Positions 11,958 to 64,000 of a stretch of 64,000 bases of DNA are shown piece after piece; position 1 is the stretch's first letter, and each line of letters starts with the position of its first letter. Location: the NCBI RefSeq assembly GCF_964194025.1, contig NC_134471.1, forward strand, positions 24,304,001-24,368,000, in the 5' to 3' direction. The notes under the pieces were generated by a model. It saw nothing but the letters and a program-made list of their open reading frames with translations, had not been told where the DNA came from and did no database searches. The translations under genes were made by a program, and so were the position numbers. The DNA comes from Convolutriloba macropyga (Eukaryota).

Positions 11958-14110
11958 TAAAGATCACCCAGAGTGCCCCCCAAAAGTCACAAAAAGGCCC
12001 CCCAACGTCGCTCAAAGGCCCCCCCAAGGTCACCAAAAGTGTCCCAAAGGTCACCCAGAGTGCCCCCCAAGATCACACAAAGTGCCCCAAAGGTCACCCA
12101 AAGTGCCCCCCAAGGTCATCAAAAGTGCCCCAAAGGTCACCAAGAGTGCCCCCCAAGGTCACAAAAAGGCCCCCCAACGTCGCTCAAAGGCCCCCCCAAG
12201 GTCACCAAAAGTGTCCCAAAGGTCACCAAGAGTGCCCCCCAAGGTCACAAAAAGGCCCCCCAACGTCGCTCAAAGGCCCCCCAAGGTCACCAAAAGTGTC
12301 CCAAAGGTCACCCAGAGTGCCCCCCAAGGTCACACAAAGTGCCCCAAAGGTCACCCAAAGTGCCCCCCAAGGTCATCAAAAGTGCCCCAAAGGTCACCAA
12401 GAGTGCCCCCCAAGGTCACAAAAAGGCCCCTCAACGTCGCTCAAAGGCCCCCCCCCAAGGTCACCAAAAGTGTCCCAAAGGTCACCAAGAGTGCCCCCAA
12501 GGTCACAAAAAGGCCCCCCAACGTCGCTCAAAGGCCCCCCAAGGTCACCAAAAGTGTCCCAAAGGTCACCCAGAGTGCCCCCCAAGGTCACACAAAGTGC
12601 CCCAAAGGTCACCAAGAGTGCCCCCCAAGGTCACAAAAAGGCCCCCCAACGTCGCTCAAAGGCCCCCCGAGGTCACCAAAAGTGTCCCAAAGGTCACCCA
12701 GAGTGCCCCCCAAGGTCACACAAAGTGCCCCAAAGGTCACCCAAAGTGCCCCCCAAGGTCATCAAAAGTGCCCCAAAGGTCACCAAGAGTGCCCCCCAAG
12801 GTCACAAAAAGGCCCCCCAACGTCGCTCAAAGGCCCCCCAAGGTCACCATAAGTGTCCCAAAGGTCACCCAGAGTGCCGCCCAAGGTCACACAAAAGTGC
12901 CCCAAAGGTCACCCAAAGTGCCCCCCAAGGTCATCAAAAGTGCCCCAAAGGTCACCAAGAGTGCCCCCCCCCCAAGGTCACAAAAAGGCCCCCCAACGTC
13001 GCTCAAAGGCCCCCCCAAGGTCACCAAAAGTGTCCCAAAGGTCACCCAGAGTGCCCCCTAAGGTCACACAAAGTGCCCCAAAGGTCAACCGAAGTGCCCC
13101 CAAAGGTCACACAAAGTGCCCCAAAGGTCAGCCAGAGCTCCCCCCAAGGTCACCAAAAGTGTCACAAAGTTCACCCAGAGTGCCCCCCAAGGTCACACAA
13201 AGTGCCCCAAAGGTCACCCAAAGTGCCCCCCAAGGTCATCAAAAGTGCCCCAAAGGTCACCAAGAGTGCCCCCCAAGGTCACAAACAGGCCCCCCAACGT
13301 CGCTCAAAGGCCCCCCCAAGGTCACCAAAAGCGTCCCAAAGGTCACCCAAAGTGCCCCCCAAGGTCACACAAAGTGCCCCAAAGGTCACCCAAAGTGCCC
13401 CCCAAGGTCATCAAAAGTGCCCCAAAGGTCACCAAGAGTGCCCCCCAAGGTCACAAAAAGGCCCCCCAACGTCGCTCAAAGGCCCCCCAAGGTCACCATA
13501 AGTGTCCCAAAGGTCACCCAGAGTGCCGCCCAAGGTCACACAAAAGTGCCCCAAAGGTCACCCAAAGTGCCCCCCAAGGTCATCAAAAGTGCCCCAAAGG
13601 TCACCATGAGTGCCCCCCCAAGGTCACAAAAAGGCCCCCCAACGTCGCTCAAAGGCCCCCCCAAGGTCACCAAAAGTGTCCCAAAGGTCACCCAGAGTGC
13701 CCCCTAAGGTCACACAAAGTGCCCCAAAGGTCAACCGAAGTGCCCCCAAAGGTCACACAAAGTGCCCCAAAGGTCAACCAGAGCTCCCCCCAAGGTCACC
13801 AAAAGTGTCCCAAAGTTCACCCAGAGTGCCCCGCAAGGTCACACAAAGTGCCCCAAAGGTCACCCAAAGTGCCCCCCAAGGTCATCAAAAGTGCCCCAAA
13901 GGTCACCAAGAGTGCCCCCCAAGGTCACAAACAGGCCCCCCAACGTCGCTCAAAGGCCCCCCCAAGGTCACCAAAAGCGTCCCAAAGGTCACCCAGAGTG
14001 CCCCCCAAGGTCACACAAAGTGCCCAAAAGGTCACCAAGATTACCCCCCAAGGTCAAAAGGGCCCCCCAAAGTCACCCAAAATACCAACTAAGATCACCC
14101 AAAACCCCCC
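11958..14110 (+). repeat. 21/22-bp minisatellite (CCCCAAGGTCACCAAAAGTG-type, about 95 units) with higher-order structure
   Basis: Repeated (C/A)AAGGTCA-N-AAGTGCCCC units; a CCAACGTCGCTCAAAGG variant recurs every few units; a block of about 650 bp is duplicated (12841 and 13490). Confidence 0.95.
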
Positions 14111-47059: not shown

Positions 47060-50000
47060 TAGCTAGATTTTATAAATTACATTTAAGTACAGTATCTTTT
47101 CTTGACTCCCATTTTAATCAAGTTTGCTGTAAAACATTGTTCCGGTTCAATGGGAAACCGATCCACCGAATGCCCCACAAAAGGTGTTAATGATGGTGAT
47201 GCACTGAAGGATCAAGGCCAAAGAAGGTCTTCGGGAAAAACCGGAAAAAGTGGAACGAGGCGTCGAAGTAGTGGAAGTGGATCAGGCGGACGGAGGGAAG
47301 ACCTCGTCACAGAAAAATTGTTCTAACAACTTACGCACTCATAACAATTTTTAAGTTACGGAACTTAACCCCATTATGCTCTTGTCTTAGATCGTCTCTC
47401 CATCTCAAACCCCCCCCCCCCCCCCCAGATTTAAGAATTTTGAGAGCAATTTTCTAAAAAGTCCCTCAATTAACCCAACAATCAAAATTAAGGTTTAAAT
47501 TAAATTTTCCTTCATTGCAAAAAATACTATTTTTTCTATTGACTATAGGTTATTAAAGTTAAAAGTAAATTAAACAAAATTAGTGTTTGAGTAAAAGGCA
47601 ATTAATATCAAATGGAAAAGTTGTTTTTCACCAAGCGACCGCTACTCGGTTTTTTGGATACGCAATGATTCTGTGCCGTCACCAAATGTGTCCGTAGAAA
47701 GAGCAGCGGTGGATCTGGCAAAAAGAGACGAGGAAGCAAGAAACGAAGGGGATCGCGTCGGCGAAGGAAGTCTTCGACTAAGAAAACGTTCAGCGACAAA
47801 AGTATCATGGTCTTGTCACGTGACTACATTTTGGATAAGATGTTGATTGAAGAGAACGAAGACCATTTTACCGAAATGTTTGCGTTGTCGAAAAAGATTG
47901 ACCAGATTTCGAAGAAGGGAGTCTTTTTTATGAATAGTGTTTCGCACTGTTTTCTCAGCTTTTCTAACAAAAATTTTTTTCAATACGCTTAGACCGTTGT
48001 CATAGCAACCAGCGAATTTTCCTCGATGGTTTTAAATATTGGATCTTTTTGGTTTTTGACCACGAACCCCCTCCCCAAACAACGTAATGCTACCCCAGTT
48101 ACACCATTTAAAAATTGAGTGTTATGTTACAAGCCAAATCATTACATTTTAATACAGCACGTGCACTTGGGGTGTTGGGGGATTCTGACCTGTTTTTTAT
48201 TAGTTGCGTATTGTGGACTGGATTTAGGAAAAAAATATTACTAACTGGGTGTTGGTGTTGATGGCAGGCGTCAGCGTGCCATGAGGGAGTTGCGGAATTA
48301 GCCAGAGTTCTGAGCGAGAACCAAACAGGGCTGATTGTGGAGAGACTCAAAAAACAGATTGCAGAGTCATTTCTCGACTTCCAGGCAAAACACACAGCAC
48401 ACGTTTTAAAGCATCAGCATTAGCATGGAAAAGAAATAACTTCATTTGTATTTGTGTTGGAAATTGAATTGAACTGCAATAATTGACTTCATTTTTTTGA
48501 AATTTTCAGCATTTTGATAGTTGTTCCAGACAAAAGATTTTACATCCTTGCATTTTTATAATTTCTGGCAAGTTTTTCAATTAGTTTCAAGTATAGTTAT
48601 TTAGTTAACATGCTCCCCTTTTCAGCATTAGGTTTTCTTAAAAAGTAGGTTTTTCATTGAATTACATTAATTTAGAAGAAATCTCTCATTTCGTTCCGCT
48701 TTTTGAACATCTTCCTGTCACATATGTTCCTTCCTACCTTCTTATGAACAATGTTTGTCGATTTTAATTTCTGATTGCGAGTTCTCAGAATACTTAATTT
48801 GCTCGTCATATATATTTCTATTAGAGTGCGTTGTGTGTGTGTTTACTTACCATTTGCCACTTACCATGACTAGAGAAAGAGCCAGCTGAAACAGCAGGAG
48901 ATCCAGGGTCTGTCTCTTGAGAACAGCTTCCAAGTAGAAGTCAGTTTGCTAGCTAAGATGAACACAGAAAGCAAACACATTCGAGAACAGGTATTTAAGG
49001 CAATCAGATCTTAGTTATAGAGCAACCAGCGCAGTTTTAAATAAATCTCTTTTATGAATTTAATCAACTCAAACGCCGCGATTCTCTGTTTTGTTAACGT
49101 TACGAATGATTTTCGGACGACATTATGAAATCAAATATTTGGTAGTTTGTCATAAAACTTACGATATAGCTTTTTTAAAAAAATGAACTGTGTTTAAGTT
49201 CAATGAATGCCCTTATGCTTATTTGATAGGACATTCTGTATCTCTTATGTTTATTTTTTTTACTACAAACAACAATTTGTTTTTGATGTTTGCGGCAAGA
49301 GCCAGAGAATTCAAAATTGTTTTCTGACGCAATGCAAACACGCAGATTTCATGCCGGTGATGAAAGATACGGATCTTTTCCAGACATCACCAGTCATTTT
49401 AGATCTTGACTTCGTGCATGTGGTGTGGATGTAAAGTTGTGGAAAGAGTAGACAGTTACTGTAAACTACTCAAGTACATTTGGGAAAGAGAGGCAAGCGA
49501 GGTAGTGGCAAAACAGGGCTGGCTAAGTCTCAATGACCACACTGATAGGGTTAAGAGGATGTTGATACAGGACTCATTGACTGAAATGTTAGTAGGATTC
49601 CAAATCTAGGATTTCAAGAATTAGTTTATTTTTTCAACAGCATAAAGTGGCGAAATGTCCTAATAAACATATAATGGAAACATATATCGTAAAAAAATCC
49701 GCAAAAAATTCAAAAGTATGAGATATATTTTCGTCCTTAACAGGCAAAACAATCAAAGGCTTATTTCAAGTTAATTTTTACCAGCTCTTTAGGGGCCTGA
49801 TTTCTTTATTTTTTCGTACGTAAAAAATGACAGAGAAAATGGGCCAAAAATGACAGAGAAAATGACAGATACTTCAAATTTCTAATCAACAAAAAAGAGG
49901 CTAGTCAATTTTCGTTCGCACTCGATGTTCCGACCCGAGCTCATCTACATTTTTGACTTAACTGTCAACCAAATGAAGAGATAATCAAAAATAGATCTTT

Positions 50001-53000: not shown

Positions 53001-56000
53001 TCATTGTCTACGTAATTCCGCAAAGTTTAGTGTTTGAATTGTTTTCCATTAAAATGAGTAACGTCTATAGCTTGTACCGCCTTTGAATAACAAAACCAAT
53101 CGGAAATTAAAATAAATGATCGCAGACTTGTCGCGTGAAATCAAGAATTGATGTATTTCAAAGTTAGAGGTAAACTCTTTGAAGTTTGAGAACTTTGCCA
53201 CGTTTTGAAAATGCAAGCTTTTAAAGCAACTTTTAACGAAAAAAGTTTGGATAGAAATAACGTATATAAAGAAAGAATTGATACAATTTACTAGATTTGC
53301 AGTTGAAATAGTCAAAATTTTGCGCAACCATTTCTTGTTTTTGCAATTTAATCGCGAATTTTTACCAGATATTTTTTGCCAGTTGAACTGAATGTTTTCG
53401 TTGTGATGGTATGGTGCATGTAATGTAGGTGCAAGATTTGTATGACTCGACTTCTGAGCATTACAAGGCATGTCAAGAGACACAACACATGGAAGCTGTC
53501 AATCACAACTTCACAGTTATACAGCAGCTGCAGCTGGAATTAAAAGAGGTTCTTTAAACTATTGCTCACTCTATTGCCACATCTATTTCTGAAAGGATAA
53601 CGACCATCCCGACACCAAATACGAAGAGGGGGTTATCCGAGGGATCCCCCCAGCTTAGTGGGTGTATATTATTTGCAACACCCCGACGCACGTGTCATAT
53701 CTTTATATAATATGGTTTACTATTTAGTGGCACGTGTTCTGTAACGGGGGTGCATAATGTACTGGGGGGGGGGGGGGGATCGGAAAAGATCCCAAAAATG
53801 CTATGAATGTTTGAAATAAGCTCCAATGGTGGCTCCTTATTTTAACTTCTGCGGCAAACCCCAAGAGCTCTACAATCATTAGTTCAATTTTTTGGAATTT
53901 TGTTCTCTTTCAATAACTTTATGGTTGCTTTGCTTACCATGAGTTTGTATAATAGAAAGTGAAGTGAAAATTGATTCACTCAATTTCCATTTTGAACAGT
54001 GGAACCGGAAGGTGGAATTCCGCGAGAGACAGAAGGCGGATCCAACGACACTTCAAGATCTGAATAGATCCATCGCACAGGAAAAAGTCACCCAGGCAGT
54101 GAATTTCAAATAAAAGTAAACAATAGAGTTCCACAAAAATTTTCCCCTTGTTTCCCTTATTTTTTGGGGTCTTTTCCAGTCTTACTCGAGATTACATTTT
54201 AGCTGAAACTTCATATGCTAGTTTCTCCTCATTTTGAAACTGTTTGATCTTTCGTTTCAATATTTTGGGCAGGTTCAAACTCGCTTCGAGCGGAGGACTT
54301 TCAACGTCAGTAAAAATTATGCTTTTAAACCTCAGTTCCTTGGATCTAAAAGTGAGATTAAATAAATGGGATTATTAAATCATATTAATGGGCTTATAAT
54401 CTTTTTTCTTTTTGCTGGCGCTATTTATGGCAGACACAATTTTTCTGTATCAAAGCAATCTTTAAAATCTTTTGTGCCTGTTACTTGACAAAATTGACAA
54501 ACTTTTATTGTTTATTTGTATTGTTTCAAAATGAAGCTTCAGTTCCACACTATTTGCTTCTTATTTTGTGTTGAATCACATCAAAAAGGAACTGCGTCTT
54601 CACTACTACACCAATAAATCCTGAGAGGATGTCATCGTGCATGTCTAATAATACTGCATATCCCAAAAAGAAGATCATTTTTACCTGCCTGTTAAGGAAT
54701 TTTCTTTACTCCTTGGTTGTCATTAGATTTTTTTTTGTTCTTGTCAGGTGACGTAGAATTAAACCAAGGGCCACTTCTCAATTACACGCAGTTTACCACC
54801 TTAATGAAAAAATACAACGATCAAGTAAAGTTTCTACATCAAAATTGTCAAAGCGTGCTTGGAAAAAGGTTACTCCTTAAGAATTTTCTATCTGACCTAG
54901 GTGACAATTGTATTTCGGGCTTCTCAGAAACGTGGTTGAAATCAGTTAACGATATTTCGTTTTGGTCGATACACTCAGAATACTTAGTGTCCTTCAGATG
55001 CGACCGACGTACTGATCTTCAGGAGAAAAATAAGGGCAGTGGTATTCTTTTGTTCGTTCCGAAGAAATTTCATCCAAAAGCACGAAATGATCTCGAGACA
55101 ATGTCAAAAAACCATTTTGAAAGTGTTTGGGTAGAGTGTAAAATAAACAAAAAGCCCGCGTTGATAAATTTGGCTTACCGTCCGCAAAAAAGCCTAATAA
55201 ATTTGTTTTTAGAACAGCTAGCCCTGGGATTAGATAGAGCAGCGACTGAAAAAACAATTTTTCTACTAGGTGACTACAAACTTAATTACTTTAATTGCAA
55301 TGATAGAAATCTTCTAGAAACTCTGATCTTGCCGTACGGTTTACTGAATTCAAATACAACTTAAGCAACAGGAGAAACATCAAGAACGAAGTCGCTAATT
55401 GACTATGTTATATGCGAAAAATTTTTATGTTCCCAGACACTGGACTCGATTCTGAAAAGTGATTACTTAGTCACGCTTACTTTAATTGGTGAAACCGTTA
55501 AAAACAAAAGAAAAGCTATCAAAAAAATTGTGTTTTGATAAAACAAAGTACTTTAAAAATGCTTTTTCCCTAGATGTTGGAAAGATAAATTGGAGATCAT
55601 TTTATTTATAAGAAAATCCTAAAATCATGTATAAAACTTGTGCTCGTCATCGGAAACGGTAATTAAAAAGCATGCTCCAAAAAAGACCGTCTTCATACAC
55701 CATGACAAGCCTAAACTGACGCTACATCAACAATGGATATCAAAAAACACAGTAAAAAAGTTTGCAAAACATCAAATAATAACAAAAAGAAAGTTTTGAA
55801 GCAGGAAAATGAAAAACATCTGCTAGATGTGTTTCAAAACTTAAAAAGTGCCAGAGAAAAGTGGAATTTTATCAACGAAATCAGAAACGCTGAAAAAACT
55901 CAGACAGAAATACCAAGACTCAAAAACAGTTTTGTAACTAATTTGACCAATGGAAATGATATTTCCAATCTTCTCAACTGTAAATTTTCAGCGTTTGGTG

Positions 56001-59000
56001 AATATTTTGGTAGAAAAGAACAGTATCAATTCTGTAATAATGCGGCACGCCTCACTAACAAATTTATATTCAGGTATACGACAACCAAGGAGATATTTGA
56101 TATATTCAACAATTTAAATTTTAAAAAATCGTTGGGTCCATCACTCATTCCAGCTTGGGTTTTAAACGATGCAAGAGAACACATAGCTGAACCTCTCTGT
56201 TTTTTGTTTACCCAAATTTTAACTGAACAACGTTTTCCTGACAACCTTAAGCGTGCCCACGTATTGCCCTTTTCAAGAAAGATGATCCTGAAGATCCGAG
56301 AAATTAACGACCAGTTTTGCTTACTGGAGCTCTAGCTAAAATTTTCGAAATCCTTCTTCAAGATCAAATATTAGTTTATTTAGAGAAGAATAAGTTGCTT
56401 GCAACAACACAGTTTGGATACAGAAAAAAGTGTCAACTATTGATGCTCTTTTATATTGCACTGAAAAAATCAGATATGATCTCAATAAAAAACATCGTCA
56501 CAGGAGCTTTATTAGACCTATCAAAAGCTTTTGGTACCATATCACATCCTACTCTTCTGCACAAAACTAAACTTTTAGGTTTTAGTGAACAAGTAAATAC
56601 AATTTTAAATTCTTTTCTGGAAAACCGTGTTCAAAAAGTCAGATTCTCAAAGTATGAATGAAATTGGATAGCACTTTACCGTGGAGTACCACAAGGTACT
56701 GTGCTAGGCCCACTGCTTTTCAACTTATATGCAAATGATATGACAGATGATACTGATATGAATTCTAATATAATCCGTACGCTGATGATACTTTTATCTT
56801 TTAATTCAATAGAATTCAATATTTTTGGAGACCCTAAAAGGAATAAATTCGAAGAATTAGTTGTTAGCGGATGTACAGTTATCGAGAAAAAAGTTGTGAG
56901 ATACTTGGTTGTTCATATTGACTGTAATCTTTCTTTCGATGAAATAAAAAATTAACTACGAAAAAAAGGCTGTTGGCATAAAGGTCATTTACTCCATCAA
57001 AAATATATTCCCAGAAAAAAACTAGATCTGCTTAACCGAACGCTCTTGTTTTAAGTCATCTGCATTACCCAACTGTTCTGTTCTCAGGTCTTAAAAATCA
57101 CTTCGAGTTACTCTAAATAAGCAACTGAACTGGGGATTAAAGACATGTTTCAAAAGAACCAAACCTGACAGGACCGCTGATCTCAAGATCAAACACAAAA
57201 TCTTACCGGTAGAATACCTCATAAAGTATCGGGTTATTAAATATTTTATAAAGCTTCTAAAAGCAGATCTACCAGTTTTCGATGAACTCAAGTTAGCCAC
57301 CCTAAGTGCTAAATTGAATGACCGTACAAACAAGCTGTCATTTGGAGCAAACAAAAAAACAAATATAATGCAAAACTGTTTTTCAAAAAAGCAATTGACT
57401 GGTGTAACGATTGGCCTCTCGCCTTGAGGCGGAATATCCCTAAAAAGCGGGCTCTCAAAACTACAATAAAAAATCAATTCTGGAATGATTTTCTAAAAGA
57501 CCCAAGGGTTTCTGAATTGAATTCTAATCTCAAATCTTTCAAGTTCAATCTATTTTGACTTTGTTTTAGGGCGGCATTTAGTCTTCTATGAAATGTTAAT
57601 TGGAGGATTAGCGTTTCTTAAAACTTTCTCTTTCCTCGAAAATGTTAATTGTAGAATTAGCGTTTTTAAAAATTTTTATCAGTTATAATTCATCTCTCTT
57701 AATTTGTCGATATTTTAGCACATTGTAAATTTAAAACAATTTTAAACTTTCACAATATGTGACGTTTGTTTCATTTAAACTTCTTAACAGTACATTGCCT
57801 TTAAACTATGTTCTGTACTTTATAGTTCATAGTCAAAGGAATTAACAATGTTTTTTTTTGTTTTTTTAGAGATCATAAACCGAGCAAACACTGAGTTCCA
57901 CAGGTGACAATTTTTTTCTCTTGATTGGATATTTAATTGACCAATTAAATATAGGCGATTTCAGATCATCTTTAATTCCACGCCGACGAAGTTGGAAGCA
58001 ATTTTTGTAAACATGGTGGTCTCTTTAATGCAAATTTTTCGCTTGACCGTTCTAAGACTTTTTGAGTGTTTTTTACGCCGTTGAATTTTTTTCCTGATCT
58101 AATTTTCGCTCTCATTCATGAGTGCCAGCAAATGAACTCAAGTGGCGGCAGTTGACAATCAGCTATCAAATAATAAGTGCGCCAAAGTTTTTGCATTTTT
58201 TGGTGATAATAGTATATGATGACCTCTAATGATTTCATTTGAAATCTGTTTCAGCAATTTAGAACAAAATTTTGGTTTCTAATGTATAGTATTTACAGAC
58301 TGCTGATAAAAATCAGCGCCACAATGTAATTTTAAAATTTTTGAAATCACAACAATGTGACCTTCCTGTCAAAACTGCAGATACGCCCTTCAAACCCACA
58401 ACCTCATCCCACTCACAACTTACACCGACTTCCACAACCCCACCTCCACAACCTACCACCTCCAATTTACCTGCCAACATGACCTGTATACCCTTTAGCT
58501 TACCAACACTTACCACTCACTTACTCTCCCAATAACTTGGCCGCGTTTTCGCTTTTGCTCTAGAACTTTTTTCCTTTTTAATTCTTGAGTGATTTATTCT
58601 CTTTTAATTTCTTGACTTTTATGCGATCTAAATTGCATTTTTCTTAAATAAATCTCTTTCTGTATGATTGTAAGACAAACGATTGTAAGACAGAATATCA
58701 CAAGGCCCCGCTAGCCGAGTCGTTAATACTTCACTCTATCACGCCTGAGATCACATTTCCCAACCCCTTACTAGTGGAACTTTTTAAACCTAGAAAAATG
58801 ATCTGGGCCACAGCCCCCTCTGAATTGAATCGCCCGACTTGTCGTTAAAAATCAATTTTTCCGAGGTTAGTCCGTTTGTTTTTTGTTTTTTTTTTAAGTG
58901 ACTCAAGTTATTGTTTTAATGATTTTAAGGTTAAAGAGTTGCTAAGTCAAATGTTGCCACTCTAGACTACTCACCGAATGGCTGTTTTATTTGACCAGAG

Positions 59001-62000
59001 AACGCACAAAAATATGAAATGTGAATGTTGTTTCTGCTGACAGCTCAATCGCGTCAACTGGCAATAGTAATTTGACCATGAGTACCGTCTTCTAATTTTT
59101 GTTTTTATTAGTCGCATTTATGTTGAATACCAACTGAAAAATCAGTTGTTCAAATTCAATCTTTGAGTTCTCTTTAACATTCTCTTGTTAATATGTCCTG
59201 AATTTCGATATTTTGTTTTAATTCTTTTTCCTGAATACGGAATGAGCTGAATAAAAGCAATTGGGAGGAAGTTTTCTAATTGTGGACATGTAACTTGAGA
59301 AAATAAATTCTTTCTCTTAAAAATATAATTATTAAAACAATGGGGCAAAATGTTAAGCAGTATTTTAAAATTTAATTGGAAGATAACTGAAAATAAAGCA
59401 TCACAATGTTAGCAAAATTTTTAAAAAAATGAACAGAGTGTACAAAGAATTTGAAAAACGGAAAAATGGAAATTTAGCTCTTAGTTTTAATAATCACATT
59501 TTTGTATATGAACGAAAACTCTAAAATTTGTCGCGTGTTGATGTTTAGCTTAATTTCTGCCGATTTCGTTTGAACTCGTTCAAAAAACTTAATCGAAACT
59601 CAAAATCAAAACTAAACAACTATTGTTCGAAAAAAAGTTCGAAAAAAATTACCCAAAAATAGGATCCACGCCCGGCGCATTTCCAAATCATACCACTCTC
59701 CTCTTTAGGGGAAATACAGCGAAAAGCAGAAAACACTAAAAATCACCTTTTTATGTATGGTTACTTCCATACTAATGTCGGGTCAGAAGGTTAATCATTA
59801 CTTTTCCTTAAGCAATACAAGAGTTACAAAACTATTGTTTTGGTGCACGAAGTTTCCGATGGCTTTTATCACAGTTTTTTGCATACTGTTTTTTGAGAAC
59901 GTTTTCCTTAGATTTTCGTGCTTCTTGCATCACATAAAAGTTTATTTTTGTTCCTCATGTTTTTGTTTAGTATTTCAAGCCGTTTTTGCAGCTCAAGTTT
60001 ACTGCCTCTTTCAATGACCATTTGTTTGTATGTACAAAACAGGCGAGACTAAATTTGAGAGTGAAGCAGTTAAGAGAAGCAATGTCCTACACAATGGAGA
60101 GCTTCAAACACAGTAACAAAGTTCACTCAGACTATTTGAAAGGGAAGTCACAGAAATTTGCACACATACATATGCTTTTCACGTCTATTAAAAAGGATCA
60201 AAGAGTTTGATTCTATGCTTTTGGTGGGAAGATAACTTTTGGTGGGAAAAAGTTGGTGAAAAATATTTAACGTATGGTTAAGAACTCAGACATCTTTTTA
60301 AGATGCTTGAGGCATGATTTTATCTCTTTTTTAAGTTGTTACTTGAATTAAGAGTATGTGTGCATTGTGATGTGATAGAAGTGAACGAAAAAACAATTCC
60401 GCAGTTATTTGAGACTACGAAGCAGCAAGCTAAAGAACTCATGAACGCCGATTTATTAGGTAAAAATCTATATTTGGCAAATACCTAAGGGGTTCATAAT
60501 ATTCGATAATGCCGCTTTCTTAATTGAGGTTTAGGTACGGTTTCCAGACTATTTCAAATCTGAGTTTGATATACTTGTTATCCGATATCTCGACGGCTCC
60601 TGACCGCGAATATAATCTTTCTTTCTCTTAATTGCCATTGATTTTAATTTTTTTTATTAACCCCAGCCTGATATTAATGCGGCGAACGCAAAGTAAGCCG
60701 ATAGGCAAGCAAGCCGACAGAAAAGCAAGCCGAAAGTTATGTAATAGTTGTTGAAACAATAAAGATTTCTTTGTGTTCGAAAGAAAGTTACTATGGAGTT
60801 TTTATTGATTTATCGAAGGCTTTTGATACTGTGAGTCATGAAATTTTGCTCCAAAAATGTTTTGCGTATGGTTTGAGGGGGAAAATTTATGACATTCTTA
60901 ATTCATATTTGACCAACAGACAACAATGTGTTTCAGTTAGCAAGCAGCGATCATCCTTTGAAAGCATTTTTTGCGGTGTACCGCAGGGTTCTGTTTTAGG
61001 GCCACTTCTGTTCTTGATTTACGTAAACGATCTGCCTGCTTTTTGTACAAACTGTAATGTAACTATGTTTGCTGATGATACAAATATTTACGGAAAGGTG
61101 GATGATGGAATTAATGATACAATAGAAAATGTGTCAGTTTGGATGGAATCAAATAAGTTAGCAATAAATAGAGATAAATGCAAGGCTATAAGTTTTGGTG
61201 CTACTAATGAGACACCTGAAATAAAAATTATGATTACAGCATCGAATTTGTTGACCACATTAAGTACTTGGGTGTATACATAGTTAGTAAACTGAGCTTC
61301 AAATCACACATTGAGAAAATAATTAGTCGGATGAATTCTTTAACAGCGGCAATCTATCAGTATATAAATTTTTTCAAAAGACACATACTAGTCCGATTAT
61401 ACAAAGTTTATGTTCAACCAGTATTACAGTACGGGGTTTTGTTGTATGGAGTGGCCAATAAAAGCGATCTTCAAAAATTAGAGTGGCGGCAAAGCATAAT
61501 TTTTCGTTTGTTATTTTCAGCTAAGAGATTCCAAAGCATTGACGAACTGCGATGGAAACACAAGTTGTTTTCTGTTAAAGAGTTACACATATATGAACTG
61601 ATAAAATTACTGTCAAGAATTCTCTGCCATGAACATCCAAGCAAATTATTAAATAACTCATTTCCGGAATTAATTGAAGAAAATATCCAAATAAATGAAA
61701 GAACTCATCTAGTCAAAACAAAATATTTGCAAACGAAGCAAAGAAACAAGTCACTCATATATAGTTTAACTAAAATGGATGAAAGTATTATTCAAAAATT
61801 ATGCTCATTTAGTGCACAGGATTTAGCAAACTTTTTACATTGTTTTAGAGACTCATTTATTATAGATAACAGATTTTTTGTTAGCCTTTTTTGGTAAGGA
61901 ATAAAGCGAGCTGCATTTTTTTTGTAAAATTGGCATTCTTATTAAACATTTTTTTAGGGGTTTCTAAGATTGATTGGAAAGTGGTATTACCAGGGTAAAA

Positions 62001-63838
62001 TATGATTTTAGAGGGTTTGAATTAACAAAAAATTAGACTTTGAGAAGAATTAAAAGGCATCACTTGACAGGTCTAGCGACCTTTTGAGGTCCTTTCGGGT
62101 TATGTTTTGTTGTTTGTAAATTTATAAATGCAAGCAATGGAATAAACTCGAGAACTAATTTATTATTATTATTATTATTAATAGTTATGTAATCTATCAG
62201 AAATAATACATTGTCAGCCGTTACAATCAATACTGCGCGTAGTATTATAGTGCATAATGTATTCCAATGCACCAAAGAAACAAAAATGCGTCAATATTAG
62301 ACATCTATTGGGTACGGGCCTCAGCAGACCGCTGTCCATGGCCATGCCTCTCATCCGCTGTAGGATGTAATCCGGAAATAGCGGGCCGTTTATCGCGGCA
62401 GGCGCGCGCCCACCGGCCTGCCAGGGGCAAATTAAAATACGGGTATCCAAAAACTTTTCGGCTTACTTGACCTCATTTTCAAAATTCGGCTTGCTTGCCT
62501 ATCGGCTTGCTTGACCGCCACCTATTAATGGTGATAATTTTCGCCATTGAGTTACGTTATGTGATATCTGCAAGGAGTGAAGCCCCTTCGTAAGCAGCTG
62601 GGAAAACAAGCGCAGTGTCTTGTGTCGAAGAGAACTGAGGGAATTGTGATGACAGCTGAACAGATGAAACTACTCGAAGAGAACACTTCTATCAATGCCA
62701 ACCTCAACGAATGACATTTCAAATTAAACCAATGATCTTATTCAATTTAACAGAAAACAAAAACCGCGCCTTTTCTGTTTACATTTTTGATGCCTTGAAT
62801 ATCCAATGACACACAACAAAGAATACCACCTATAGAGAAAATTCGGCGTTAAAAATGATCATGGTCGTTTTTTGGAACATCTCAATTCGAATGTTTGGAT
62901 ACCCCTCTCCCTTTCTTCTTCCTCCCCAAGGAAACAGTTCTTAGCTTTATATGCGCAAAATAATGAATTAAAGGATTTAAAAGAAAACAGACGTCTATAG
63001 TTCATGTAAAACGTTTAATGACAAAATCAACGTGTTATTATCATTCGTTGCGATATATCCAGTTTCTGGACAACGCGATAGCCAGAACCGAGTCAGACCT
63101 CAAATCCTGCAAGGTCGATTCCCAAAACACAATGCACACCCTTACAACTGGGAAGGATGAAATCGAGGAATTGGAGTGGATCAAATTGGAGGGAGGAAGA
63201 GTTCTGGCCAGATTGACGGGGTTGACAAAGAGTCTTCAGCTGACGATTCCCAACATTGACAGACATCGGATGGCAATGATCAGGAAGAGACAAGAGTATA
63301 GGTTGGCAGGAGATCTTGGAAATTATATCTTTGCTGCCGAAAATGAAAAAAAATTCGGAAAGGACTTGACATCTTACACACTATATATACACTATATAGA
63401 TCTTTCGGAGATCTTGCCTATCGATATCGATGGAGGAGTTATAGTAGCACATCATCATGTAGCAAATCATGAGCTGATTGTCCCCCCCCCCCCCCCCCCC
63501 CCTCAACAAGAATGCTTCCCTTAAGTTGAGAGACAATTTTCGCCTGATATTTCCCAATTAGACTTTAAATGTAAATATGCAATTGTTGAATTAACCTTAT
63601 AACGATACTGCTTTGAGAAAGAAAGCAGGCCTCAAGTTTAGCATACCTGATTACGCCACGGACAATTTCGAATCGTAGTCGATTTTTTCTACTGTCAGTT
63701 CTCTTTTTATTTTCTCTGCATTGTTTGGTGTAGCTCTAATTTGTCAGACATGCGAGTGACCCTTAGGAAGATCAGTGACACTGTCTCGGGAGACACAATC
63801 TGGCAACTCATCCGGGAACTCTGCACCAAATGGGCCAG
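44220..63838 (+). CDS. Multi-exon gene (about 17 exons, continues past the window): Ser/Arg-rich N-terminal region plus long coiled coil; family unassigned
   Basis: Phase-consistent manual chain: 44220-44364, 45185-45313, 46726-46806, 46875-46937, 47184-47295, 47698-47917, 48268-48384, 48874-48990, 49403-49587, 52779-52896, 53468-53548, 54000-54095, 60043-60142, 60379-60459, 62575-62708, 63063-63309, 63748-63838. Each is a GC-richer, stop-free island, and all internal ones follow an AG. Confidence 0.6.
44406..44587. mobile_element. MITE (TIR CGG(A/G)TCTTTTCCGTTTGT)
   Basis: 17/18-bp inverted termini. A related copy lies in the opposite orientation at 53641-53793 and a more diverged one near 48040-48230. 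Confidence 0.7.
45185..45313 (+). CDS. Exon of the coiled-coil gene
   Basis: GCAG acceptor; DSFCDSNSSVSNGDDEVID...QTD; donor ACG|GTGAGA. Confidence 0.6.
46726..46806 (+). CDS. Exon of the coiled-coil gene
   Basis: TTATAG acceptor; EVPASNNRYKLQIDVKRCKSFRYKAPL; donor TAA|GTATGA; phase 1-1. Confidence 0.55.
46998..47058. repeat. (TA)n microsatellite
   Basis: Run of TA dinucleotides. Confidence 0.95.
47184..47295 (+). CDS. Exon of the coiled-coil gene (Gly/Ser/Arg-rich)
   Basis: VNDGDALKDQGQRRSSGKTGKSGTRRRSSGSGSGGR; the phase-2 donor GAG|GGAAGA joins it to RKSSGG. Confidence 0.5.
47698..47917 (+). CDS. Exon of the coiled-coil gene
   Basis: CCGTAG acceptor; KSSGGSGKKRRGSKKRRGSRRRRKSS...MLIEENEDHFTEMFALSKKIDQISKK. 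Confidence 0.65.
48268..48384 (+). CDS. Exon of the coiled-coil gene
   Basis: CTAAC branch point at 48241 and GGCAG acceptor; ASACHEGVAELARVLSENQ...FLDFQ; donor CAG|GCAAAA. Confidence 0.65.
48874..48990 (+). CDS. Exon of the coiled-coil gene
   Basis: RKSQLKQQEIQGLSLENSFQVEVSLLAKMNTESKHIREQ; donor CAG|GTATTT; phase 0-0. Confidence 0.7.
49403..49587 (+). CDS. Exon of the coiled-coil gene
   Basis: TTTTAG acceptor; ILTSCMWCGCKVVERVDSYCKLLKYIWERE...DSLTE; donor AAT|GTTAGT, phase 2. Confidence 0.65.
49790..52170. repeat. Second copy of the AT-rich repeat family seen at 1-2455
   Basis: 52057-52170 is homologous to 2340-2455, including a terminal hairpin CCAC-AA-GTGG. The left boundary is approximate. 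Confidence 0.45.
52779..52896 (+). CDS. Exon of the coiled-coil gene
   Basis: TSKKFERDADRILERYNELKDSNEALAKDLFLVLNKLKQ; donor CAG|GCTAGT. Confidence 0.7.
53468..53548 (+). CDS. Exon of the coiled-coil gene
   Basis: ACQETQHMEAVNHNFTVIQQLQLELKE; donor GAG|GTTCTT; phase 0-0. Confidence 0.6.
53641..53793. mobile_element. MITE, same family as 44406-44587
   Basis: Its reverse complement shares GGATCTTTTCCG, poly-C, GTTACAGA, CACGTGCGTC and CCACTAAGCTGGG with the 44406 copy. Confidence 0.65.
54000..54095 (+). CDS. Exon of the coiled-coil gene
   Basis: AACAG acceptor; WNRKVEFRERQKADPTTLQDLNRSIAQEKVTQ; donor CAG|GCAGTG (or GT three bases downstream). Confidence 0.65.
54531..57560 (+). mobile_element. 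Degraded CR1/L2-group non-LTR retrotransposon (APE endonuclease and RT)
   Basis: SGDVELNQGP, FSETWL and LLGDY (endonuclease); LLDLSKAF, GVPQGTVLGPLLF and YADD (RT); many frameshifts. Confidence 0.85.
58704..58856 (+). mobile_element. Possible tRNA-derived SINE remnant
   Basis: Starts GGCCCCGCTAGCCGAGTCGTTAA (tRNA-like 5' end with an A-box); the B-box is degenerate. Confidence 0.3.
60043..60142 (+). CDS. Exon of the coiled-coil gene
   Basis: ARLNLRVKQLREAMSYTMESFKHSNKVHSDYLK; phase-1 donor AAG|GGAAGT. Confidence 0.6.
60379..60459 (+). CDS. Exon of the coiled-coil gene
   Basis: EVNEKTIPQLFETTKQQAKELMNADLL; donor TAG|GTAAAA; phase 1-1. Confidence 0.7.
60680..62522. mobile_element. TIR-flanked DNA element containing a LINE RT fragment
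   Basis: 23-bp perfect inverted repeat at 60695-60717 and 62486-62508; 8-bp direct repeat TATTAATG at 60672-60679 and 62523-62530. Confidence 0.6.
60760..61897 (+). pseudogene. 5'-truncated CR1/L2-group LINE RT fragment
   Basis: FIDLSKAFDTV, GVPQGSVLGPLLFLIYVND and FADDT; frameshift near 61240. Confidence 0.88.
62575..62708 (+). CDS. Exon of the coiled-coil gene
   Basis: GVKPLRKQLGKQAQCLVSKRTEGIVMTAEQMKLLEENTSINANLN; proposed donor AAC|GAATGA. Confidence 0.6.
63063..63309 (+). CDS. Exon of the coiled-coil gene
   Basis: FLDNAIARTESDLKSCK...MIRKRQEYRLA; proposed phase-1 donor CAG|GAGATC. Confidence 0.65.
63748..63838 (+). CDS. Exon of the coiled-coil gene
   Basis: TTGTCAG acceptor with only phase 1 open; DMRVTLRKISDTVSGDTIWQLIRELCTKWA; donor CAG|GCATGT. 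Confidence 0.65.
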
Positions 63839-64000
63839 GCATGTAGTCAACCCACCGATTTTATTCAACCCTTGTATGCTCAAGAAAAGGAGCCGCTACG
63901 TGTACCAGTGATAATATAAATTCAAGCTTGGTTATAACCATTTTGTTTTTCACCGGACCTAAAAATTGTTGCTGATTGCAAGTTTTCAATTACATTCCAA

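Follow-up and report, generated by a model that had tools for sequence, protein, structure and literature searches.

The window analysed here, a 64,000-nucleotide stretch of the Convolutriloba macropyga genome (RefSeq assembly GCF_964194025.1, NC_134471.1, positions 24,304,001 to 24,368,000, forward strand; positions below are those of the window), carries the acoel gene LOC142338330, which supplies three consecutive coding exons at 62575-62708, 63063-63301 and 63734-63842. The best explanation of the two introns between them is that the first, 62709-63062, is a true GA-AG intron and the second, 63302-63733, an ordinary GT-AG intron, a reading to which we assign a probability of about 0.8. An earlier note, based on the letters of the sequence alone, had placed GA donors at both junctions and had taken the continuity of the encoded protein as support for GA-AG introns. 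That proposal held for the junction 62709/63063 and failed for the junction 63310/63748.

Evidence for the predicted GA-AG intron

The public product of the gene, XP_075244143.1 (P0002; uncharacterized protein LOC142338330 isoform X4, 558 residues), was recovered by an exhaustive protein search with 99% identity over 80 residues to the query exon 63063-63308. This isoform, which is not the longest product, is the gene model used throughout. XP_075244143.1 was placed on the window by exact matching, and for each junction all exon ends and starts that reproduce the protein were enumerated within 10 nt on each side. Database searches were made with single exons or with XP_075244143.1, exons being joined only in local scripts for frame checks. 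Among 1.8 billion proteins, the matches comprised the gene itself, an orthologous fragment of 69 residues (P0004) and coiled-coil noise. The fragment comes from a metagenome scaffold of 1,524 bases (L005). A tblastn search with XP_075244143.1 identified the orthologous gene there, its introns being much shorter (Table 1). Once spliced, the L005 gene has one open frame, of which 268 residues align without a gap to residues 284-551 of XP_075244143.1 and span six C. macropyga junctions. Two C. macropyga introns, with donors GC 54096 and GT 63843, are absent from it.

Three lines of evidence, namely the public gene model, the position and phase of the intron in the orthologue, and coding selection up to the GA, show the predicted boundaries of the first intron. 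The exon 62575-62708 has a single open frame, starting at 62577, which meets TGA at 62712-62714, one codon past AAC/GAATGA (a slash marks the cut), just as the earlier note had described. The acceptor AG/TTT lies at 63061-63063, and the junction 62708/63063, the same join that the note had drawn, is the unique solution for the RefSeq protein. In the orthologue, the corresponding codon boundary also carries an intron of the same phase (ANLN/YLDNAIA in L005, ANLN/FLDNAIA in C. macropyga), and the donor of this intron, AAT/GAAAGA, is again GA. The GA-AG intron thus appears, from this shared position, old enough to be shared with a related species. The note had also proposed aligning the predicted peptide to orthologues, and the alignment is indeed gap-free across 62708/63063, which cannot be said of the note's own second junction, where two residues are missing. 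From bases 62498 to 64000, contigs from four independent DNA read sets match the window exactly except for a poly-C run near 63482, which differs in length. The four read sets agree with the window at every splice site, which excludes an assembly error as the source of the GA. The poly-C run itself occupies 63475-63502, within the GT-AG intron, and differs by 1-2 bases between read sets. On these grounds, the RNA is presumably cut at 62708/63063 and at 63301/63734.

Several observations weigh against this assignment. The GA donor carries A at +3, but the exon ends in AAC (AAT in L005) and not in the AG of the Eurytemora and Oikopleura GA donors, although AG before the cut is a statistical consensus in such donors and not a requirement. 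The donor at 62709 pairs with canonical U1 small nuclear RNA (snRNA) at only about four of nine positions and, by usual standards, counts as weak. The LOC142338330 model is a Gnomon prediction, and in models of this type non-consensus splice sites require transcript support. The assignment further depends on isoform X4 among isoforms X1-X4, and two word searches of the protein collection found neither a longer isoform nor a transcript-derived fragment. Finally, an in-frame GC donor lies 12 nt upstream (AAT/GCCAAC, 62697; AAG/GCGAAC at the same place in L005) and remains a competitor.

Use of this GC donor would turn ANLN into intron sequence and produce a GC-AG intron, in a gene where GC donors are common. 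RefSeq, by contrast, retains ANLN, and the four codons, which under the GA donor 62709 join to TTTCTGGAC, differ from those of L005 by two synonymous third-position changes and no replacement. The flanks of the site (T at -1, CAAC at +3 to +6) also fit U1 poorly, whereas the other GC donors of the gene read AG/GCA. We therefore regard the GC donor as improbable, though it fares better than the readings considered below.

The second intron

Joining the GT donor at 63302 to 63734 keeps the frame and divides an AGC codon between the two exons; L005 has this codon divided identically, again by a GT-AG intron. The acceptor AG at 63732-63733 is the first AG past the pyrimidine run and lies 14 bases upstream of the position, 63747, at which the earlier note had ended the intron. 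The resulting product, QEY-SSNLSD-MRV, aligns without a gap to SNF-SKEISE-IRV of the orthologue. Judged by the gene model and the orthologue, this intron is an ordinary GT-AG intron.

The reading in which both introns begin with GA (62709 to 63063 and 63310 to 63748) draws on the facts that the pair 63310/63748 is in frame, that the open frame runs on past 63302, and that a GA donor does occur in LOC142338330. The note was also right that the sequence from 63748 is open in one phase only, the frame starting with the ATG at 63750. Its further step, that this phase excludes the donor TAG/GTTGGC, was mistaken, as it hinged on the acceptor at 63747, while with the AG at 63732-63733 the GT-AG intron stays in frame. 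The donor CAG/GAGATC that it preferred, with the product QEYRLA-DMRVTLRKI, is contradicted by both RefSeq, whose junction is 63301/63734, and the orthologue. Compared with the latter, QEYRLA-D-MRV is two residues short (four residues against six). Moreover, the orthologue has a GT at the equivalent place, and its frame continues as TTC AG/G TTT TGA, with the stop three codons on, so that in L005 the frame cannot run on to a GA donor further downstream. A GA start for both introns is accordingly very improbable.

Limits of the heptad argument

The earlier note had itself listed a GT donor at 62646-62647 (ATT/GTGATG) as an alternative end of the first exon, which would give a GT-AG intron at 62646-63062. 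This site is in frame with 63063, and its GTGATG is also present in the orthologue. The 21 codons that would be lost, 62646-62708, are the best conserved part of the alignment to L005, with 7 identical codons, 10 that differ only synonymously and 4 replacements (81% amino acid identity). Such conservation, with mainly synonymous changes, indicates that they are coding, and RefSeq keeps them. We give the GT donor hardly any credence.

The comparison of the GA donor 62709 with GT 62646 also shows how little the coiled-coil argument can decide. The note had claimed that the heptads run unbroken across the first junction, and the best register is in fact the same on both sides of 62708/63063. An equal register is expected by chance about once in seven cases, and the GT donor would remove 21 residues, exactly three heptads, so the register is kept under both donors and only the residues at core positions differ. 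The register therefore cannot separate GA 62709 from GT 62646, and the heptad argument, with almost no discriminating power, was right at the first junction more by luck than by strength. One right and one wrong junction in this gene illustrate the limits of frame-and-heptad arguments.

The least probable alternative, also raised by the note, is that the transcript stops at TGA 62712-62714, one codon past the proposed donor, and that a separate gene begins at 63063; it is opposed by RefSeq, which joins the exons, by the orthologue, whose exons preserve both order and phase inside 1.5 kb, with an open joined frame and no stop there, and by the genome, in which no paralogue of LOC142338330 was found that might confuse the mapping.

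Non-GT donors in the gene and in the genome

The LOC142338330 model has 11 introns in the window, and six of the 11 have non-GT donors (GC, GG or GA). The orthologue supports three of these six (54096, 60143 and 62709). All acceptors of the model are AG, and the base at +1 is always G. Every GC or GG donor follows an exon ending in AG, and the dinucleotide is mostly followed by A or AAGT; such flanks fit compensation through other U1 contacts.

To place this frequency in context, tubulin introns were resolved against intronless alpha- and beta-tubulin copies of the C. macropyga genome. The tubulin genes (loci L043-L061) yielded 22 resolved introns, 21 GT-AG and one GC-AG (L051, CAG/GCATGT), a count that excludes three junctions (one each in L053, L057 and L061) whose best-scoring solution has neither a GT nor a GC donor. 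Uniformly pervasive non-GT donors were rejected on this comparison, since one of 22 tubulin introns is non-GT against six of 11 in LOC142338330; non-GT donors are thus real, but their frequency differs strongly from gene to gene. Six alpha-tubulin copies (L033-L038) lack introns.

Pairing between donor and acceptor regions

The donor of the GA-AG intron lies within one arm of a perfect 10-nt inverted repeat, whose other arm ends shortly before the acceptor (Table 1). No other window of the intron 62709-63062 pairs equally well, and the fold of the whole intron closes on this stem. The GA intron of the orthologue has no such donor pairing, so that pairing is not a general requirement of GA donors.

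Comparable duplexes were seen in two GC-AG introns of LOC142338330. The donor region 48383-48403 pairs with 48825-48859, 14 nt upstream of the acceptor (-23.8 kcal/mol, z -4.0), and the donor region 54093-54107 pairs with 59994-60008, 34 nt upstream of the acceptor (-17.4 kcal/mol, z -3.5). The 3' arm 48825-48859 contains ACTTACC, whose reverse complement reads as a consensus donor (GGTAAGT). At z of -3 or lower, duplexes are present in three of the six non-GT introns of LOC142338330 (GC 48385, GC 54096 and GA 62709) and absent from all 26 GT introns (five of the same gene, 21 of tubulin). When the L005 introns (two non-GT, two GT) and the single tubulin GC intron are added, the counts become 3/9 and 0/28 (Fisher about 0.01, calculated by hand). 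The test was made after the first case had been seen, and the enrichment of pairing in non-GT introns is suggestive only.

Spliceosome and possible mechanism

Of 27 U1 genes found in the genome, 24 could be read, and all 24 keep A7-C8-C9, the partners of +2, +1 and -1. An explanation by U1 variants matching A, C or G at +2 was therefore rejected. U6 has the canonical ACAGAGA box. No match to U12 snRNA (Rfam RF00007) was found in the genome, a weak negative, as 44 of about 111,000 first-look candidates were scored, and at most a faint indication that the genome may lack a minor spliceosome. A U12-type intron was also rejected on the donor sequence, which reads GAATGACA where the U12 type has (A or G)TATCCTT together with a TCCTTAAC-like branch site.

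The GA-AG intron 62709-63062 is most likely removed by the major (U2-type) spliceosome. The U1 mismatch at +2 may simply be tolerated in this lineage, where a base other than U at +2 would be accepted, as in Oikopleura and Eurytemora (PMC7072748). The two intron ends may be drawn together by the pairing between the donor and the segment lying 12 nt ahead of the acceptor, a role that is only a guess because the pairing is missing from the orthologue.

The canonical U1 5' end, ATACTTACCTGG, is found beside several full-scoring copies with other 5' ends, namely TTGATTACCTGG, TTCAAAACCTGG / TTTAAAACCTGG, TTTATACCTGG, ATACTAACCTGG and TTCAGAACCTGG. In these altered ends, the changed bases are those that pair with +3 to +6 of the intron; the partner of +2 is intact. 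The U1 loci include L004, L010-L012, L018, L019 and L024-L029, for example C15:12297861-12298022, C7:54712531-54712688 and C10:13481482-13481642.

A broader proposal can be offered only tentatively, and we consider it doubtful as a whole. Convolutid acoels might splice with any base at +2 (GT, GC, GG or GA) and might keep GA donors that lack the exon-side AG between species. Some of their non-GT introns might be aided by an internal sequence that lies 9-34 nt ahead of the 3' splice site and is complementary to the 5' splice site of the same intron; it would act as a cis stand-in for weak U1 pairing in a genome that has several U1 genes with altered 5' ends.

Comparison with known systems

Almost all animals, to our knowledge, have few introns beginning with GA, Oikopleura and Eurytemora being the known exceptions. 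GA-AG introns occur at high frequency in Oikopleura dioica and Eurytemora affinis (Frey and Pucker, 2020; PMC7072748). The C. macropyga case resembles theirs in that GA...AG introns of an animal nuclear genome stand beside GC-AG introns, non-GT donors are unusually frequent, and A occupies +3 (GAA). It differs in lineage, being from an acoel, and in the exon end, which is AAC (AAT in the orthologue) where theirs is a strongly conserved AG. With respect to this comparison, no U1 copy read in C. macropyga is changed at the partners of +1 or +2.

GC and GA donors are also common in dinoflagellates, and Amoebophrya has non-canonical introns known as introner elements; a share of its non-canonical introns carry inverted repeats of 8-20 nt that pair both ends (PMC7789003). 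The 10-nt repeat 62705-62714/63041-63050, which pairs the 5' and 3' ends, is similar. In contrast to Amoebophrya, there are no direct repeats across the boundaries here, and the intron is single-copy, shared with a related species and hosted by an animal. An origin of the GA intron from an introner or a miniature inverted-repeat transposable element was rejected. The word depth is single-copy over 62528-63440, neither a direct repeat nor a target-site duplication is present at the boundaries, and the orthologue has the intron, although a 10-nt inverted repeat is present. Being single-copy and also found in a related species, the intron is not a recent mobile insertion.

In the larvacean Fritillaria borealis, the major spliceosome handles many non-GT introns with conserved snRNA sequences, and changes in snRNA modification and in U2AF, not in U1 sequence, have been proposed (PMC13326754). 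There, both intron ends are non-canonical, whereas in LOC142338330 the 3' ends and the first base are invariant. At the human FGFR GA-AG site, the GA donor is used by the major spliceosome and depends on a canonical site six nucleotides upstream (summarised in PMC7072748). The GA donor and, probably, the major spliceosome are common to both cases, but the 60 nt before 62709 hold no GT other than 62646.

A full-text literature search combining acoels with splice-site terms found no account of non-GT or GA-AG introns in acoels. The public RefSeq model already contains the GA junction implicitly. Together, a GA intron retained at one position in the gene and its orthologue, and a gene structure in which more than half of the introns are non-GT, suggest that acoels form a third animal lineage in which the 5' splice site is read tolerantly. 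Gene finders limited to GT and GC donors will break such genes, which may be one reason why low BUSCO scores have been reported for acoel genomes.

Table 1. Exons, introns and related features of LOC142338330 in the window and of its orthologue on scaffold L005 (positions on L005 are prefixed; a slash marks the cut)
Feature	Position	Strand	Sequence or description	Basis or remark
Model donor	47918		GG	
Model donor	48385		GC	
Model donor	48991		GT	
Model donor	49588		GT	
Model donor	52897		GC	
Model donor	53549		GT	
Model donor	54096		GC	Gap-free against L005, where the intron is absent
Model donor	60143		GG	Gap-free against L005, which has GC there
GT-AG intron before exon 62575	60460-62574	+	Model donor GT at 60460	Gene model
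Coding exon	62575..62708	+	G-VKPLRK...INANLN	Exact map of XP_075244143.1; 68% amino acid identity to orthologue exon L005:318-451
5' arm of perfect 10-nt inverted repeat	62705..62714	+	CAACGAATGA, donor positions -4 to +6	Duplex -13.6 kcal/mol, z = -3.0 against shuffles
Predicted GA-AG intron	62709..63062	+	Model donor GA; 354 nt, phase 0; AAC/GAATGA ... ATATCCAG/TTT (CCAG/TTT)	Sole junction reproducing XP_075244143.1; orthologue GA-AG; same bases in 4 read sets
3' arm	63041..63050	+	TCATTCGTTG, ends 12 nt before last intron base	Perfect complement of 62705-62714
Coding exon	63063..63301	+	FLDNAIAR...RKRQEY, ends with AG of split AGC codon	Exact map; orthologue exon L005:656-894
Predicted canonical GT-AG intron	63302..63733	+	Model donor GT; 432 nt, phase 2; TAG/GTTGGC ... 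GGTGTAG/CTC (cut at 63733/63734), poly-C run near 63482	Gene model; orthologue
Second GA donor of the earlier note	63310..63311	+	CAG/GAGATC	Unsupported: absent from RefSeq model; orthologue stop; 2-residue gap
Coding exon	63734..63842	+	C of split AGC codon, then SNLSDMRVTLRK...KWARH	Exact map of XP_075244143.1
AG taken as acceptor by the earlier note	63746..63747	+	TTGTCAG/AC	Inside exon (codons TCA GAC)
Donor	63843	+	CAT/GTAGTC	Ends exon 63734-63842; next exon outside window
GC-AG intron	L005:122-179		G/GCAAGT	
GT-AG intron	L005:261-317		ACG/GTGTGA	
GA-AG intron	L005:452-655		AAT/GAAAGA ... TTGTAG/TAT	
GT-AG intron	L005:895-957		CAG/GTTTTG ... AAGTAG/C	Contains a run of N (938-947), left unchanged

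Gene product and neighbouring features

The product of LOC142338330 is an uncharacterised coiled-coil protein. Pfam gave no family above the cut-off, either for the exons or for the whole protein XP_075244143.1, and a CCDC178-like lead is weak, with an Atlas feature score of 0.88, under the tool's own line of 0.9.

Two reverse-transcriptase open reading frames, 60771-61283 and 56317-56661 (Pfam RVT_1, E = 1e-26 and 6e-6), belong to non-LTR-like (lacking long terminal repeats) retroelements on the gene's own strand and sit in its two longest introns (54096-60042 and 60460-62574). A high-copy repeat at 62300-62527, in the intron just ahead of the exon 62575, has a word depth of 1e4-1e5 against about 40 in its flanks, ends sharply at 62522-62524 and contains three TCGGCTT(G/A)CTTG units. 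Far upstream, positions 12001-14000 have 59% G+C, a GC skew of -0.32 and an AT skew of +0.51, while the rest of the window has about 35% G+C.

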